From Bugula neritina (Eukaryota > Animalia > Bryozoa), in contig OZ037767.1 of assembly GCA_964035545.1 (NCBI GenBank), positions 4,914,707 through 4,978,706 on the forward strand: DNA of 64,000 nt, given 5' to 3'. The notes beneath the pieces were generated by a model. That model did no database searches, had not been told where the DNA came from, and was given only the letters and a program-made list of their open reading frames with translations. Below, piece by piece: positions 17,754-31,900 of the stretch (its first letter is position 1; each line of letters opens with the position of its first letter). Both the position numbers and the translations under genes were made by a program.

Positions 17754-19539
17754 TAGAGCACCAGGTTGCTAATGGAGGAATTGAGGGGGTTGCTGATGGA
17801 ATAGGAAAATTTTAGCGAACTGTATAGAACAGTAATAATCTTAAAATGTCAATCAAGTTTTTTTCGCCAGTTCAAGACCAACAATGTTGGCATTACAGAA
17901 CACACATTTTATTATTCTTCTATGTTTGTCAAAGTTTTGTATAGTATGTTGTGATAACTTAATTTAATAAGTAAATGCGTTATCTAGTTTGATATATTCT
18001 AAAGACTTGCCATGCGTTTTATGTTAAGCTGAGGTCTTATATAGTATGTTTCCCCCAAACCCTCACCCACTTCAGTTATGTAGGAACTTCTACTATATTT
18101 CCGTCCGTCCTTTCTTATATGCCGTCCAAAACAGTATATGTTTTATAGAATAATCTCTTTTTGGAATTATGTGCCTTTTAATATATTTTACATACCGTAA
18201 TGTATTGAGAGTATTAGTGATAAATATTATTAACCAGTATTTTCTAACAAGCTCATGACTGTGGTTTTAATATTGCTTTTAGTGCATGTGCGTTCCTATG
18301 AAATATAATATGTTTATGAAATTAAATAAACAGTTTTTGTTTATAGATTTTAATAAGGTCTAGCCTCTTCAATATATTACCATACTTGTTCACAAACTAT
18401 ATGATCATATAATATGCATTTGAAGCTCTAGAATTCAATATACAACTCATCTGTATAACATGCCTTGATAGATATGTAAGCACCTTGATTAGCTGATGGA
18501 AAATGGTGCTACTTGTTTCTAATTGCTTTGAAATAATATAATCACATAATAACTGAAGGTAGATCATCTTTAGCCTGTGCACTACGAAGAAAAATGCTAT
18601 CAATTAACATTACATAGTAAGCTAGCATTTGCTGCAATGTGGGACAGAGGTTGTGGTGACCTATGAACTCTAGATTAGAGTTATCTCCACGTGTATTGAG
18701 AAGTGAAATATGGTAGTATTATACATGTTGCTGATGAGACAACATTGAGTCACTGACAGCTTTACATTCCTGCCAAGTGGTAGATTCACTATCTAGTGGA
18801 CAAGACATACAATGCCAAAGTTAAAGGTGCCAGTCATTTCCAGAGAGATTACTTTAGAATTTGGTGAGCAAAGATTTTCAAGCAGCAGTATTGCTACATT
18901 GTACTATTGTAATATATTTTACCTAAGATGTACTATTGTAGAAAAAACTTAAACTTATTAGTGTTACTAATTCTAGTAGCATGTGTAAGTTTTCACTAAT
19001 GATAACACAAGTTAGGAATTAGTGTTTTAGTTACGATTTATGAGTGATTTTATTATTTATGAATAAACCAGCAAGCAATGTAGAGTATATTCATTGTCGG
19101 CCTACTCTTGTCTTGATCTAGCTATATGGCAGTAGACAGCTAGTCACAGCTGTTGTCTACCACGTGACTAAGTTAGTTACTATAATAGATTTGGAAACAT
19201 GAAATAATCTATTTTCAATTTAAGATAATATCCTATATTTTCACATCACAGTCACTACATTTCTAAGCTTCAATCTGTGGATTTTTCATTTATGTTACAT
19301 GAATAAAACTAAAATCACAAGTTCCTCCTATGAGCATTCATTTAATGCGAAGCAATGGAAACACAGCTTGTAGCTAGTTTATCACGTAATTATTATAAAC
19401 TCAAGTAACTGTTTAGACTACAGTTATGCTGTTAGAAATTTTATGATATTTTATGATCCTTTGCTGCTATACTAAGTACACTGACACAGTCTTTGCTTGA
19501 CATGATGTCTTGAAGTGTGGTGTTGAGTTTACCCATGTA

Positions 19540-19610
19540 GTGCCCTTGGTGTAATAGTTTACTCTTCTGCTTACGAGGCTGAGGTCTCAGGTTTGAACCC
19601 CAGGGAGGTT
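19540..19610 (+). pseudogene. Degenerate tRNA-like sequence or tRNA-derived SINE head
   Basis: A-box-like tggtgtaatag and B-box-like ggtttgaaccc at tRNA spacing; the cloverleaf stems are imperfect, so it is not called a functional tRNA. Confidence 0.45.
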
Positions 19611-20011
19611 GAAAGTTTTATTTAAAGTCTGGTTGGTCTGCCATTATGCCATTTACAAAAGGGGTGTGGCCTAAAGTCTTGTATATTTACAATGTTAACT
19701 AAGTCATCCAGTTTTAAAATTATTGCAATTTTGTTATATATTATACTTGCACTAAAATTTATGATTATTATAAATACATTTGGCTTGCTTCTATAAAGTG
19801 TCTACTGGATGCTCTCTTTGTATTGCCAAAATAAAAACTCCGAAACTTTATAAACTGTCTTCATTCACAAACTTTTAAAATAATTATAATTTGGAATGTG
19901 GAATTTGAAAACTTTAGTGCAATTATTTTTGAAATTCTGCTTCATGCCTGGATGTTTTTTGTTATTTCTTCATCAAAATATACAAAACCATTCATTGAAC
20001 ATGGACAAGTT

Positions 20012-20017
20012 TTTATT
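20012..20017 (-). terminator. Candidate polyadenylation signal AATAAA of the orphan - strand gene
   Basis: tttatt on the + strand, ~115 nt after the stop codon and just beyond the GC-rich antisense block. Confidence 0.5.
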
Positions 20018-20054
20018 TACAAAAAAACATAACAATAAATAACAAATATATTTC

Positions 20055-20806
20055 GCGGTGGCGAATGCCGGTGGAAGTGGTTGCCCGCAGGGTGACCAAG
20101 ATCTTCTGGGCTGAGACGAGCGGGTATGCTGCTCAAAAGAATGTTTTATAGGCAGCATACCCTAAGGCAGTGGCAGCTAGACCCACAGCAGCACAAATAC
20201 CCACTTTTTTAAGTGTGCTGTATTCCTGTAAATAAATTAATCAAATTACTACAAGGTGCAAAAGTATGATAAAACAAAACAAAGTAGCGAGTGAGCAGTG
20301 ATATAAGATATGCAGAAGATAAAAGCATACTCTTATACTTACTTCATGGGTCTGCCACTGCCTCATCTCTGCTCGTCTCAGCCGGCCACCCTGCTCGATA
20401 GATCTTGTGACAGCTTGGGCTGTTTCAACCACTTCTACAAATATTGAGATACACAGTTGATACACTAAAAGTATACTAACATAATACTAATACGAATACT
20501 ACATGAATATTTGAGCATGGTGACATACTACAATATTTTCCTCTCATGCATTTGTTATCGATCTAATACATTCAAGTGCTGTTACTTTGTTAGCATGTTC
20601 CTATCAGCTTGGTATCTCAACAACATAACTATTGACTTACCCACTGTTGTGGGAAGACACCAGACTGGTGTACCCTGTCTGGTGTGGTGACTCATGTTTA
20701 AGAGTTGATCTCTCATTTTCAGAGGGTACACCAGTCTTCCTTCTTCCCACAATCTCCAGTGCAGGTAACGCTTCTTGATTGCCTGCACTGTGGCATTCGC
20801 CACCGC
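20055..20806 (-). other. Large nested RNA secondary-structure domain in the spliced mRNA (exon 3 to 3'UTR)
   Basis: Nine complementary pairs of 9-15 bp, perfect except for one G-U, in nested order; coordinates are given in the findings. Confidence 0.85.
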
Positions 20807-21399
20807 ATCCATATGGGTATCTACAAGATCACAAGATCATGGAGTGTCATCTCTGGGAAATACTGTACATGTTTAAATGTGAATATTCATATCAACATAC
20901 TCTGCAGTTAGCGTGATGGTTGTGCCATGGCATGTTCAGTGCTGTTAGTTTTGAAATGTCTTGAATACTTACCATTATGGTTTAATGACCAAATCTTATC
21001 CTTTAGGTTTTCTGTGGAATCCACTAAAAAGAAATAGTACATATTAAAGCACTGCAGCTAAACTCTTTAAGCCCAATGAAACAAGTTAAATACGTATGCT
21101 TGGGCCAAGAGAATTATATACAGTCTATATATAAATTTATTGAATTTTTTCGGCATTTCTCATTTTAAAATATGCATTCTGGGGCCACACCATGTATAAT
21201 GAATTCGGTTTGAATACAACAACTAATATTATAAACATAGAATCTACTTACTGTAATAGTCTATGTCCGACGGTGGCCTTCTATCTGGGACAATAACGTA
21301 CATGTCTTCACTGTTTTGGTGTAATTTCCAGTCCAATTGACTCTCCTCCCTTATCACTGGTATCATACTGGGCTGAATTTCTGTAGTTACTTCAGACAT
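20133..21399 (-). CDS. Orphan 187-aa protein with a C-terminal tail anchor; 5 exons
   Basis: Exons 21399-21252, 21023-20973, 20820-20641, 20434-20343, 20225-20133. All four donors are GTAAGT, acceptors are YAG, and phases 1/1/1/0 join without stops. Product: MSEVTTEIQPSMIPVIREESQLDWKLHQNSEDMYVIVPDRRPPSDIDYYMDSTENLKDKIWSLNHNDTHMDAVANATVQAIKKRYLHWRLWEEGRLVYPLKMRDQLLNMSHHTRQGTPVWCLPTTVEVVETAQAVTRSIEQGGRLRRAEMRQWQTHEEYSTLKKVGICAAVGLAATALGYAAYKTFF*. Confidence 0.85.
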
Positions 21400-21460
21400 C
21401 TTTTAAATTGTTTCTCTGTAGTCTTTCTAGCTGTAGGTATGGTTTTGACAATTAAGCTCG

Positions 21461-21580
21461 ACTGATTTTTCATCAAAATCTGCCCCCTTTTATACGAAAA
21501 AGAACAATCGGAAGACAATCGAAACTTTTTAATTGGCCGGTAATGGCTTCATCGCTAACTTATAATCATCTTATTGGATA
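21461..21580 (-). promoter_or_regulatory. Pol II core promoter of the orphan gene: TATA box, Inr, CCAAT boxes
   Basis: On the - strand: TATAAAA at 21494-21488, TCAGT initiator at 21465-21461 (A+1 at 21463, 31 nt from the first T of the TATA box), and CCAAT at ~21536-21532 and ~21577-21573. This implies a 64-nt 5'UTR. Confidence 0.7.
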
Positions 21581-23068
21581 ACAATTTTGGTCAAGAATTT
21601 TTTGCTCGTGACTATTTATTCGTGATACCACAAAATAATTAGAACAATGCTCAATTGTCATAAGTTTATGTTGAGGCTGCAGCTTCAACATAACATTGTA
21701 TGAATATTAAACATTTCTAAAATTATTTTGTGGTTTCAGGCATTTCAAAATTAACCAACAAATTTATTCCATCTATTTTAGCTATTTATTTTTATTTTTC
21801 TCAATTATACTGAGCTTCTATCAACAATTAAAAATATAATAATACCATAAACAATGCTGTATCCAATTTCCATGGAAATAAAAAAGAGCAATTTACACTC
21901 CTTATAGCAAGTATTTATTTTCTATGATAATGGTTACGCTAATTTCTGCATAGTTGAACTGTTAACAATGGGAGGTTAACAAAATCGAGAGTGACAACGA
22001 AAACTGCAAACATGTAATTAATGTAGTTTAATAACTTTGATTAACCAAGAATTTTTTTATGTATTTTTAAGCATGATTTTACAAAGTTTGCAATAAGTTC
22101 TACTAATCTAGCAATATGTACTGTGCAAAAAATTTCTCCTTTTTTATTTAATATAATCTCCATTGTGTCGAGAACATTGCTAGTTTCCTGTGTTTTCATT
22201 AATCAAATTTTCCATTAACAGTGTCACGGTGTAAATGGGTTCTTACAACAATAATGTCAAACAGACTGATAGATATTAACGTGAAATCAGTAGAATGCTA
22301 CTTTGTCTTCTTCATAGTCTGAGTCATGGTGAAAGAGAATCCAGTCTCTGAATATTTTTATTAGTAGTTATTGTGGACAGGCAAATCCTGAAATTCTTTT
22401 CAACTCGCGAATAGTTTTATCTACTTTTATTTACCTGCATCATTCTCTAGCTTTCACAGAAAGAAGTTTTCTGAACTTATATAGGCCTATTCACTGTGAT
22501 CAAATCTAGTTATAATATTTTGGAGTTATCTTCTCAATGATTTTATTAATTAGAAAATTGTCTTGTTGTGTTACTGTAAAGAACATAATGATTGTTTGAT
22601 ATTGAACTAATTTGCATGTAAATTTAGGCGTTCAATAAGTTCAAGAGTGTGCAGAATATTAATTAGGTAATTATATTAGTATTACATATATAGAAACACC
22701 TAATCATTCAGCATGCATCTATTCAATGGTTTAAACAATGCACTTAAGTGGTTAAAACCAATCAGTTCTTAAAACTCAAACTATAATGTTGGCTAAATAT
22801 CACAGTGCATTCCATTAACATTCTCAAGCTGTATGCATGGCTGCAACTTATTGTTTGATTCCAACTAGAAGAATGCCTGAAATAGAGCGAGTGAGAGTGT
22901 TACACTTTCAACAAGTGCATGCTAGTGTCTAGAATGTAGAGAACTTATGTTACTGATTGAATATGAGGAAGATTTCTATATTCTACACTTATCCAGGTCA
23001 GATATACTATGTTTATGCTGCTACAAAATTAGAAATATACTTTTTTAGATTTGTTAGTCAACAAATTC

Positions 23069-24235: not shown

Positions 24236-25205
24236 AGAGCAGCGGTGGTCTAGGGAACACTAGCGTAGTAAACACAAGGTCATAAGTTCAAACTCTGGCA
24301 GAATAATTAGTGATATCAGGAAGAGCATCTAATAATAGTAGTCATACACCGGCTTTCCATGTACCGATCTCAGATCGATCTCGCTGAGATCGATCCATGG
24401 AAAGACGCTAAAGATCGATCTCAGTCGTTCTGAGCTGGTCGGTCTGTAGAGCTCGAACTCAGATCGATCTCAAGGCAATAAGGTCATGGAAAGACGAAAG
24501 TTCGATCTGAGAAATAGAAAAAGACTGTTCGCTAAAATGTCGCCGCTAATAAAAATGATAATTTATTGGTAATTACTAAGCAAATTACTTAATAATTACT
24601 ATAGCCACATTTTCAGATGCCAAAACTTTGACTTTCAGTACTATGATTAAACAAACTCAATTATATAAAATTATAGACGGTAGAAGGTGGAAAAAGTAGG
24701 AGCATTTAAATTGAATTTAAATGGCTAGTAAAACTTACTTTCATTAGTTATTTGCTGCTTATTTTTAAGCCCAATAGTCCTGTAAGTTTATGAATAATCT
24801 GCACAACAGCTATTAATTTTATATAAGCTGTCAAACTAAAATATTAAAATGAATTATCTTAAGTTGGCTAAATTGCTTCTTACTAAAAGCTTTACTGCGT
24901 AGAGTTTATAGCTGGCACTGAATTTTAGACTATGGAAATTTTGTTTTTTCAAAAGCATTAGCTTGAATCACCCAGGTGGGTTAAAAAATATAATATTAAA
25001 GTACTCTTCACTTAAGAGGAGGCAACTCCGCTAGATCGATCTGACACTCTCATGGAAAAACGATCGATCTGATCAGCACATTTCTCAGATCGATCTCAGC
25101 GAGATCGATCTGAGATCGGTACATGGAAAGCCGGTGCTTGTGTCACAGCATACGCAGCAGTAGCCTGTTTGCCATCAGAGGTTTACACTGGGAACTTTAA
25201 ACAAA
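24236..25205 (+). mobile_element. tRNA-derived SINE copy interrupted by a MITE
   Basis: 24236-24330 resembles 48404-48505 (gtggtctaggg...gttcaa...ggca...gtgat...aggaagagcat); the similarity resumes after the MITE (ccatcagaggttt...ggga.ctttaaac). Confidence 0.55.
24347..25136. mobile_element. MITE / non-autonomous DNA transposon, 790 bp, perfect 49-bp TIRs
   Basis: caccggctttccatgtaccgatctcagatcgatctcgctgagatcgatc (24347-24395) is the exact reverse complement of 25088-25136. Subterminal gatcgatc and catggaaa motifs are repeated; no ORF; no clear TSD. Confidence 0.9.
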
Positions 25206-28900: not shown

Positions 28901-31900
28901 ATCAGATTTTGTGTATAGAGTTGTAAACTCTACAGGTAAACTCTTATGTATATATAAAATAATATCTTAAACTCTATCGAAAGCCTCAACAAACTGTAGA
29001 GGTGTGTCACTGGTGCATGGAAATTGTAATTAGAAATGTGTTCTAATCATTAATACAGGTTACATCTCATTTAATAGAATTTAAGCAATAATCTTAGCCA
29101 GACTAATATCAATTCATTATAAATTGCGGAGACTACTTCTAAATTATTAGTATGATTTTTGTATGGACATTAAATTGAATGCACCTTTTTCATATAGGTG
29201 ACGCAATGATTCACTTAAATGGATTCTTTTTTTCAAAAGCAATCAACTATTGGCTAACAGCAGTAAAGTGTTATATGATTGAACCATCTCACTTAGTATT
29301 CAGTTTACTTGCTGGCTATAGAAGTTGCTTTCACATATATGACTCAAATATTGTCACTAATTCACTACCAGCAAATGACATGGTGATATATGTATATCCA
29401 AGTGATTAAACACTATTTGTATTACCATCATTATTTCATTCGTTTGACACAATTTTCTAATCTTGCACTTTACATCTGCAGAGATTAAATAAAAACAGGA
29501 ACAATATCAAACAAATAAAATTTTGGAGTTGCCTTCACTTTAGAACTTGAAGCTTAAAGGATTGCTCTATCTTAGTTTATTACAATCACATTATAATTAT
29601 GAACTATAATCTAATGTGTATGCAAACAATTGTGACTTTGCAAAGGGATATGTGCCTAGAAAACAGCTTTTCAAAATTCCAATTTTGAGGGAGGTAAAAT
29701 TTTCAGCCATGAAAAAGAATAGCCTAATACGTGACGTGTGAACACCAGTAACTATGCTGCACGTGCTAACTATAACGCTAGTATTCAAGGTTGCTGAGCA
29801 CAACATCAACCAATAACGCTCAAGCAGTTACAGTGCGCTATATAGGTCAGCTTTGGTGCGCCCGTAATATTGCACAATCTGACCTAGTTTAGATCGATCG
29901 CAGGCATTCATCCTAAAGAATGCATGTTTTTGCAATGCTTTTTTCTAATGTTTACAAGCAAAATATGGCCTAATGTTATCACATACATGTTATTTAACAT
30001 GTCAAAAAACTATAGATTGAGATAATTCACATTTGCACTTCTATAAATATACAAATTACGAGCTGAACGATCACATCTCACAGTCATATTTCTATAGTTA
30101 TTCATTTGTATAGTCACGTGACCAGCAGGAATGCTGGCGCTGTTACGTCACATTTCCCAGCTCATTTCAAAATCGGCGTTTTGGCTGTTACCAATCTACA
30201 CCCTCAACTTCAACTAACTTTTTCTACCTTTGGTCAAATGCTTTTTGTCGATGCATGCTTAGAAAAACACAATATTATGTGTGTTTGACCTAAATGGCCA
30301 TTTATTAGACAAGATAGAGCAATCCTTTAAATGAAGGTTTTTATTCAGATTCAAACATGCTTGAGCCTAGAAAAGGGAAAGCAAACTTGTCAAACATAAC
30401 CGTTGAATAAAGCAATCATTTTATCTGCATGATTAACAAAACCTATCAACTACCAGCCAAGTAAATTCTCTTAGCTTAAATTTCATTCAAATTGAATTGA
30501 GCGAATTATTTATTTAAATTCTGAAACTTTTGGCCTCATCATAACAAATATGCAACTTTTCTCTTATGTCCAACAGAAATAAAGCTCTTCAAATCAAAGA
30601 AAAATGTCAGCAAACTTGACTTGCTCTAGTCATGACAACTGCTTAAATTGTCTGAACTATTTTCCAATGCTTTTAGTTTATATTTATAAAGTTAGTAGAA
30701 ATTGTTCCTTTAAAACAATATTTAGTTTTTTACCCTGCTACAATCTGTGTACTTATTTTATAGCCTATAATGGGGCGATGTAGCAAATAATTTGTGCAAT
30801 ACGTTGTTATTATAGATTTGTGGCTGTGTTTTCACCCTTGCAGTATCAAAGGCACTGCACTACTGCCATTGTCAACACTCTAATATTCCTAGTATATGTG
30901 TTTGCCATCATAATGAATATACCCACATTCCTCACAATTAGGTAAGTTACATTCCCTGTAAGGTAACATACCATTCTGTTTGTGAATCATTGACACTATA
31001 CTTGTATCTTATATAGTTATGTACAAATATTGTATAGATATGATATTGTACGTATAGACATGGTATCATATAGGTGTGACATTGTATAGATATGATATTG
31101 TATAGGTACGCCATTGTATAGATAGGTATTATATAGATACCTACAGTATTGCATAGGTACAATATTGTGTAGGTAAAATATTGTATAGGTACCTACAGTA
31201 TTTTATAGGTGCAATATTGTATGGGTATGATATTGCATAGGTACAGTACTGTATAGATATGATATTGTATAGGTATGGTATTGTGTATAGGTACGATATT
31301 GCATAGGTACAATGTATTGTATAAGTACCTACAGGATTGTATAGTTACGGTATTGTATAGATATGATGTTGTTTAGGTACGACAAAACAAGGAAGTTTAG
31401 AACGTTACAACCTGAAGAAGTTGTCAAGCAGCTGGGATTTAGCACAGGTTCCTTGACGCTGATTGTTCAGGTGGTGGTGCCGATGGTGATAACCAGTGTT
31501 CTGTTAGTTCCGCTGCTCATCAAGTTATGTAGTAGCTCCCCCATCCAGCGGTGAGACCACTTTCTATGTTTTGATACTCTGCTTATATGTTTCTAGTTTC
31601 TGAACGACAATATTATTATTCTTCATATTGATTTTAATATTTTATAGCATACACTAGTTTGTGTATTCTTATTCTGTACATTTTTATTTCCTAAATATTA
31701 CCTACTTTGCACAATATCACATGCGATAGAGTATAAACAGTAAGGCAAACTTCTTAGGAAATTGGTTAAATAGTTGTCTTCTCTTACATAAAAACATGTT
31801 AATATTATAGCAGCTTTGTTCCACTGGCTCTAATCAGGACTATATAATATAGGTGTAATTGAATTTTAATTTAAATTATCTTTCTCCCTTTTCTTATAGC

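Follow-up and report, generated by a model that had tools for sequence, protein, structure and literature searches.

A stretch of 64,000 nucleotides (nt) from the Bugula neritina genome (contig OZ037767.1, positions 4,914,707 to 4,978,706), called here the window, carries on its minus strand (21399-20133) a gene of five exons with GT..AG introns, a single 187-codon frame and a TGA stop. The subject of this analysis is the 78 nt immediately 3' of that stop codon (20132-20055, minus strand), an array of five short antisense boxes, each complementary to a segment of the coding sequence (CDS) of the same gene. An initial annotation made from the letters alone had described these 78 nt as GC-rich in AT-rich DNA, and they are indeed 64% GC compared with about 32% in the window. 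The five pairings that it listed are all present and nested, four of them perfect and one with a single G-U pair (Table 1). Starting from the box nearest the stop codon, the partners lie in exons 5, 4 and 4 again, at the exon 3/4 junction and in exon 3.

Exact complementary words of at least 10 nt cover 52 of the 78 nt, compared with a mean of 0.48 nt and a maximum of 21 in 5000 dinucleotide shuffles of the 78 nt. Box 1 and its exon 5 partner form a hairpin of 11 base pairs (bp) whose 19-nt loop encloses the stop codon. Box B matches the spliced exon 3/4 junction at 13 of 13 positions and the unspliced DNA at 12 of 13. The G-U pair of box C is a G-C pair in three other copies of the gene (L004, L005 and L035). 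Past the TGA, a further 39 codons of the minus-strand frame are free of stops, across the entire box array and up to a TAA in the polyadenylation signal (20007-20135). Stop-codon readthrough into this frame was considered and set aside: box substitutions among paralogs are without a coding pattern, and frame-shifting insertions and deletions occur further downstream.

Public sequencing data contain the box array in spliced form. Four public runs hold the stretch, all as contigs, in which partial editing would be hidden. Run X3, whose recorded source is metatranscriptomic, includes a 332-nt contig on 20055-20224, 20342-20434 and 20641-20707, in which introns 3 and 4 are excised just as their GT..AG boundaries predict. 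This contig answers a transcript check proposed with the initial annotation, since it joins the box array to exons 5 and 4 and to part of exon 3. Coverage of the gene in X3 is confined to exons. A second X3 contig has the exon 4/5 splice followed by L005-like exon 4 sequence, and a second family member therefore looks expressed. The RNA status of X3 is flagged as uncertain, with a DNA retrocopy as the less likely alternative; no intronless copy was seen among the family copies in the 216-Mb assembly. Runs X1 and X2 contain introns and promoter-upstream sequence and so behave as DNA. Splicing of exons 1 and 2 is predicted from the frame and the splice-site boundaries.

The mature message is predicted to fold with exceptional stability. 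Spliced exons 3-5 plus the boxes, a 443-nt RNA assembled from the window sequence, have a minimum free energy (MFE) of -239.4 kcal/mol, compared with -137.6 +/- 5.2 for dinucleotide shuffles (z -19.7). The RNA is likewise an extreme outlier against synonymous-codon shuffles (z -11.2) and against a null in which only the 78 nt are shuffled (z -14.7), and the first two comparisons had been proposed at the outset. The MFE structure is the nested architecture with five box helices, and the segments skipped by the boxes fold among themselves, as had been noted, into two hairpins within exon 3 and a helix between exons 4 and 5 (helix E). Boxes, exon 3 hairpins and helix E enclose about 365 nt of coding sequence and leave the 5' third open. 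Exons 1-2 fold in an ordinary manner (z -0.1; unpaired probability 0.44), the start codon lies outside the fold, and the first 66 codons are predicted to be unstructured. The average unpaired probability of the clamped region is 0.30, compared with 0.41 in shuffles; the longest perfect helix measures 15 bp and the longest imperfect helices 24-30 bp. A cmscan search of window positions 19000-22500 on both strands against Rfam, with E up to 1, gave no match, and the fold belongs to no known RNA family in that search; the first reading had recognized none either. The larger exon 3 hairpin (20647-20752) is so symmetrical that the peptide of its antisense strand resembles the sense peptide (E 0.003, genome search), so that RNA pairing makes two protein segments co-vary.

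The unspliced RNA (20055-20820, 766 nt) forms the same closure at -301.2 kcal/mol (z -14.5), with introns 3 and 4 extruded and folded on themselves. This shared closure, together with the exact flanking of intron 3 by the partners of box B, might point to a splicing aid, in which exon 3 would be splinted to exon 4 by box B, exon 4 would be linked to exon 5 by helix E, and both introns would be looped out so that their removal is helped or regulated. Such a role is highly improbable. The box array is transcribed last, when the introns may already be removed, and helices A, C, D and 1 are unrelated to splice sites. In five of five intact copies, the spliced junction is a better match for box B than the intron end is. 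Pairing of the last nucleotides of an exon hinders U1 binding, and the last nucleotides of exon 3 would be paired in just this way.

The imperfect helices of 24-30 bp fall in the size range of site-selective ADAR substrates, and a multicopy, fast-evolving family with many pseudogene arrays resembles the families policed by hairpin RNAs. Both features suit a double-stranded RNA (dsRNA) substrate, either edited by ADAR so that the protein is recoded or processed by Dicer into small RNAs that control the family, but this explanation is rather unlikely. The X3 RNA contigs and the L035 DNA contig share the same 22 differences from the window with an identical spectrum, and no A-to-G change, the sign of A-to-I editing, was seen at consensus level between the X3 RNA contigs and the L035 DNA allele, which come from different samples. 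The longest perfect helix is short for Dicer. Frame and fold are moreover kept together, a better fit to a translated mRNA than to a small-RNA precursor.

The gene belongs to a family with many copies in the 216-Mb assembly, and these copies divide by the state of their reading frame. All five copies whose exon 3-5 frame is open (the window copy, L002, L035, L004 and L005) have the fold, at -234 to -246 kcal/mol and z -14 to -17, with 52% GC and an unpaired probability of 0.28-0.32. All four stop-codon copies (L003, L006, L007 and L008) are without it (z -2 to -3) and have 44% GC and an unpaired probability of 0.39-0.45. The homolog comparison suggested by the initial annotation thus goes in favor of the fold: paralogs that keep the frame keep the pairings with compensatory changes, and paralogs with stop codons have lost them.

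Changes among the intact copies are coordinated across helices. Between the window and L004, 60 of the 63 UTR-CDS pairs are unchanged (UTR, untranslated region), and the others comprise one one-sided compatible change, one double change and one broken pair. Helix A carries a compensatory change at 20799/20062, from C-G to U-A, in both L004 and L005, and in these two copies the box B helix reaches 14 bp, its 14th pair formed across the splice junction by changes on both strands. When partner states were permuted within each pair type, the expectation for L004 was 0.97 double changes and 128.9 +/- 1.7 kept pairs; the copy has 5 double changes (p 0.001) and keeps 138 of 156 pairs. L005 resembles L004 in this test, and p for the two copies is 0.001-0.003. 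The same test finds no coordinated changes in pseudogenes L003 and L006-L008 (p 0.4-1.0). Synonymous divergence in fully paired codons compared with fully unpaired codons is 0.17 versus 1.89 between the window and L004 and 0.06 versus 0.80 between the window and L035, a roughly tenfold reduction in intact copies. The overall ratio of nonsynonymous to synonymous divergence (dN/dS) is 0.24-0.66, a sign that the protein, too, is somewhat constrained. The fold is very probably a selected RNA structure, and the selected multibranch domain of about 430 nt over coding sequence that was initially envisaged is supported by the fold, the paralogs and the compensatory changes.

Neutral origins of the boxes deserve attention. 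Template-switch mutations can reportedly create RNA hairpins and perfect inverted repeats (PMC8794818; 10.1101/038380). Helix 1, with its 19-nt loop, is compatible with an inverted copy made close to its source in one replication event, and such an origin is plausible for it and for an antisense copy in the PEX11 gene of the same genome. These events explain origin and not maintenance, and four of the five helices here span 235-722 nt of DNA and skip introns. The boxes could in principle be a functionless relic, a shrunken inverted copy of complementary DNA (cDNA) or the product of template switches. Template switching can produce perfect inverted repeats and apparent compensatory changes in one step, box B fits the spliced junction better than genomic DNA, as expected of a cDNA-derived copy, and the PEX11 case shows that antisense exon copies arise in this genome. 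As an account of the present state, a relic is nonetheless very unlikely, since it would decay equally in all copies and only the stop-codon copies have lost fold, GC content and coordination. Synonymous sites in the helices are strongly conserved, and the arms of helix A, far apart for short template switches at 722 nt in DNA, carry a compensated change all the same. An inverted cDNA-derived copy or template switching is plausible as the origin of the boxes, not as the cause of their maintenance.

The PEX11 gene (C1:25993442-25996906) has in its 3'UTR a 48-nt, 92% antisense copy of an upstream coding exon, located about 70-117 nt past the stop (repeat pair L036:1354-1401 and L036:2681-2728). 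It is a candidate for a second, unrelated fold-back mRNA, so that at least two unrelated genes of this genome have acquired UTR copies antisense to their own CDS. PEX11-like matches with in-frame TAA/TAG stops also occur on small contigs (C39:29182-29750, C42:6140-6676 and C66:297432-297967), which may derive from a co-assembled organism with a different genetic code.

Table 1. Features of the gene and its box array (window coordinates) and copies of the gene family.
Feature	Position	Strand	Details
TATA-like box	21487-21494	-	Putative promoter, from sequence; CCAAT upstream at 21532-21536
Exon 1	21252-21399	-	ATG 21399-21397; 49 codons + 1 nt; from GT donor and frame continuity
Exon 2	20973-21023	-	51 nt; from AG/GT boundaries and frame; peptide conserved in paralogs
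Exon 3	20641-20820	-	180 nt; donor confirmed by 20434/20641 joint in spliced contig; contains helix A 5' arm (20792-20806), hairpins (20757-20790 and 20647-20752) and last 4 nt of helix B (20641-20644)
Exon 4	20343-20434	-	92 nt; both splice junctions present in spliced contig; contains part of helix B (20426-20434), helices C and D as one 24-nt run (20371-20394) and helix E 5' arm (20346-20365)
Exon 5, coding part	20133-20225	-	TGA 20135-20133; encodes C-terminal hydrophobic segment; contains helix E 3' arm (20163-20186) and helix 1 5' arm (20152-20162)
UTR box 1	20122-20132	-	Pairs with 20152-20162 (exon 5); 11 bp, perfect; kept in all intact copies
UTR box D	20109-20121	-	Pairs with 20371-20383 (exon 4); 13 bp, perfect
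Unpaired bulge in box array	20098-20108	-	11 nt; holds 8-nt palindrome AAGATCTT at 20098-20105
UTR box C	20087-20097	-	Pairs with 20384-20394 (exon 4); 11 bp, one G-U
UTR box B	20071-20083	-	Pairs with 20641-20644 + 20426-20434 (spliced exon 3/4 junction); 13 bp
UTR box A	20055-20069	-	Pairs with 20792-20806 (exon 3 start); 15 bp, perfect; closes the whole domain
AATAAA polyadenylation signal	20012-20017	-	From sequence; predicted 3'UTR about 135 nt, of which 78 nt are boxes
L002	73 kb away, inverted		98% identity to window; exon 3-5 frame open; exons 1-2 found
L004, L005	1.33-1.37 Mb away, inverted pair		Exon 3 only 69% identical; exon 3-5 frame open; L004 exons 1-2 found, highly diverged
L035	936-nt DNA contig, other sample		About 93-95% identity; exon 3-5 frame open
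L003	Same contig (C3), about 0.88 Mb away		86% identity; in-frame stop; box array deleted except box 1
L006-L010	Tandem arrays, C5:10.30-10.37 Mb		71-74% identity; stop codons
Distant cluster	C5:14.56-14.71 Mb		45-48% identity (exon 3 peptide); without exon 4; most copies with stop codons

The L002 duplicate is gene-sized, about 1.9 kb from promoter to poly(A) site, and a large chromosomal palindrome is ruled out because the inverted duplicate covers just that length. Homologs of exon 1 are present in L002, in L003 and, very diverged, in L004, whose 5'UTR contains an additional intron. The window copy and L004 are 85% identical in the promoter/5'UTR region (21444-21674) and 90-100% identical in the 3' part, which includes intron 4 at 91%; intron 3 is 76% identical. 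Exons 1-3 are highly diverged, and exons 1-2 are beyond detection at the DNA level and share about 30% amino-acid identity. The pattern is that of a hypervariable N-terminal half flanked by conserved ends. Tandem, partly truncated pseudogenes form two clusters (C5:10302845-10374729 and C5:14565206-14712206). Units of the first start at the exon 3 acceptor. The second is without exon 4, yet its UTR box A is nearly intact; with stop codons and decayed pairings as well, it was set aside as uninformative for covariation.

The encoded protein of 187 amino acids has a C-terminal hydrophobic segment and a fast-evolving N-terminal part. Residues 165-183 form the only strongly hydrophobic segment (mean Kyte-Doolittle value 1.64, with Lys on the flanks), and outside the C-terminal 31 residues only segment 121-139 is positive (0.58) in windows taken every 12 residues. 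With a single hydrophobic segment near its C-terminus, the protein looks tail-anchored. The gene had been called an orphan, and database searches agree. Four exon peptides scanned separately against Pfam match no family, the sole match being MitoNEET_N on the hydrophobic tail at 12 bits (cut-off 23 bits). With exon 3 as the query, exhaustive HMMER searching across 1.84 billion representative proteins returned seven matches: four spurious low-complexity repeat proteins and three true matches, all unspliced fragments of the same family from the same or a very close organism. Judged from these searches, the gene is confined to this marine invertebrate lineage and forms a genome-specific multicopy family.

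Tail anchoring bears on a further explanation of the fold, as does the palindrome AAGATCTT. Tail-anchored proteins cannot use co-translational targeting, so RNA-based targeting of the message would make sense for the predicted protein. The palindrome is exposed in an 11-nt bulge, the sole large one on the UTR strand, which separates helices D and C, and it is kept in nearly all copies, old pseudogenes included; it could be a site of dimerization or protein binding, a speculative assignment. The fold might then be a localization, packaging or dimerization signal, in which a dsRNA-binding protein reads the fold or the palindrome, or two mRNAs kiss, and the message is carried to or stored at one place; the imperfect helices of 24-30 bp would serve such binding. 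This is unlikely. The 8-mer occurs once in the window, which equals chance expectation, and its retention in pseudogenes may reflect shared ancestry alone. Five helices with 63 bp also exceed the needs of known localization elements.

Taken as a whole, the locus is best explained, with modest confidence, by a selected self-clamping fold that acts in cis on the mature mRNA. Its main job is possibly, though tentatively, the control of translation and mRNA lifetime. Initiation would be free, and the helices would have to be opened one after another by a ribosome or helicase, beginning with the outermost, A, on the way to the stop codon. Behind the ribosome the untranslated boxes could pair again, ribosome load would be limited, and most of the coding region would stay double-stranded. 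The outcome would be an mRNA that is long-lived, throttled or stored.

Several points weigh against the selected, translation-controlling clamp. The copies represent only about two independent intact lineages (window/L002/L035 and L004/L005), so few events underlie the covariation. The window copy and L004 also resemble each other much more closely in the 3' half (about 20050-20390, with intron 4 included) than in exon 3 or intron 3, which means that apparent gene conversion inflates the conservation of boxes 1, D and C and their partners. The pseudogene comparison likewise gives lower synonymous divergence in paired codons, more weakly (0.36 versus 1.34), and part of the paired/unpaired contrast may therefore be compositional. 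Ribosomes unwind stable helices, so a strong effect on translation is not assured. Finally, protection from hydrolysis is not the whole story, given an unpaired probability well above that of mRNAs designed for this property, which are compared below.

A clamp of this sort is a cis-acting long-range mRNA structure, a phenomenon known as such, but no described equivalent of a 3'UTR-to-own-CDS clamp was found in the literature for a cellular mRNA. RNA virus genomes and the RNAs of long interspersed nuclear elements (LINEs) have long-range CDS-UTR and end-to-end pairings that cyclize the genome. There too, a large domain is closed by short boxes distant from each other in a single RNA, and covariation preserves them. 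Cyclization, however, serves the replication or reverse transcription of a mobile genome and uses one or two boxes, whereas the present RNA is a spliced cellular mRNA with introns, a promoter, a polyadenylation signal and five colinear boxes. Hairpin-RNA loci, which give rise to endogenous small interfering RNAs (endo-siRNAs), carry inverted, sometimes retroposed, copies of their target genes. They resemble this locus in having an antisense copy of a gene's own, possibly spliced, sequence and in involving a fast-evolving multicopy family. Their arms are long and near-perfect, about 100 nt or more, and lie in a separate non-coding transcript that yields small RNAs; here the antisense sequence amounts to 78 nt in boxes of 11-15 nt within the coding mRNA itself, and the longest perfect helix is 15 bp.

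In yeast, long-range pairing between the intron and the 5'UTR of HAC1 mRNA reportedly silences translation (PMC5114014). HAC1 is likewise a cellular mRNA in which distant segments pair in cis, sequence-specifically and under selection, although it uses one helix that blocks the 5'UTR and is relieved by splicing. The present gene instead has five 3'UTR boxes that clamp its coding region, leaves its start region open and folds most completely once spliced. A HAC1-type block, with the 5'UTR or start codon occluded, was not found: exons 1-2 show no unusual folding.

Designed, highly double-stranded mRNAs have a predicted resistance to hydrolysis proportional to their paired fraction (PMC8499941). 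These "superfolder" mRNAs share with the present fold a double-stranded coding sequence, a low unpaired fraction, a very low folding energy and the possibility of an open start region (PMC8499941). The designs recode the CDS and reach unpaired probabilities of 0.13-0.20 (PMC8499941), whereas here a non-coding tail supplies much of the pairing and the unpaired probability is 0.30. A reading of the fold as a hydrolysis-resistant superfolder therefore fits only partly and was not adopted.

Other repeats lie elsewhere in the window. A repeat of about 795 bp at 24339-25142, with terminal inverted repeats of about 75 nt, has at least 10 copies at 99-100% identity on many contigs and looks like a recently active DNA transposon of the miniature inverted-repeat transposable element (MITE) kind. 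A dispersed repeat of about 780 bp (29554-30331) has more than 25 copies genome-wide at 96-99% identity. A short element at 23063-23158 matches a cluster of overlapping copies (C9:9240297-9240494) on both strands and is perhaps a palindromic or satellite-like repeat.

In cellular mRNAs, long-range structure tends to be weak and statistical, and its connection to selection is difficult to establish. The clamp described here is a discrete and very strong structure, with controls available in the same genome: the intact paralogs, which keep the fold through compensatory change, and the pseudogenes, which lose it. The effect of a clamped coding region on an mRNA is directly testable with the 78-nt element, a natural counterpart to engineered, highly structured therapeutic mRNAs. 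The locus also indicates that a protein can be constrained by selection on its RNA, since peptide segments encoded by the two arms of a hairpin have to co-vary.

Preservation of the fold in intact copies and its loss in broken ones suggests an undescribed way of mRNA control. It is conceivable, if doubtful, that the locus represents a new class in which 3'UTR "guide" boxes co-evolve with their own coding sequence and zip the spliced message shut until a helicase or the first ribosome opens it on demand, for example in stored messages of larval or dormant stages. Other membrane-protein genes in this lineage may make use of the same principle, as the PEX11 fold-back in this genome hints.

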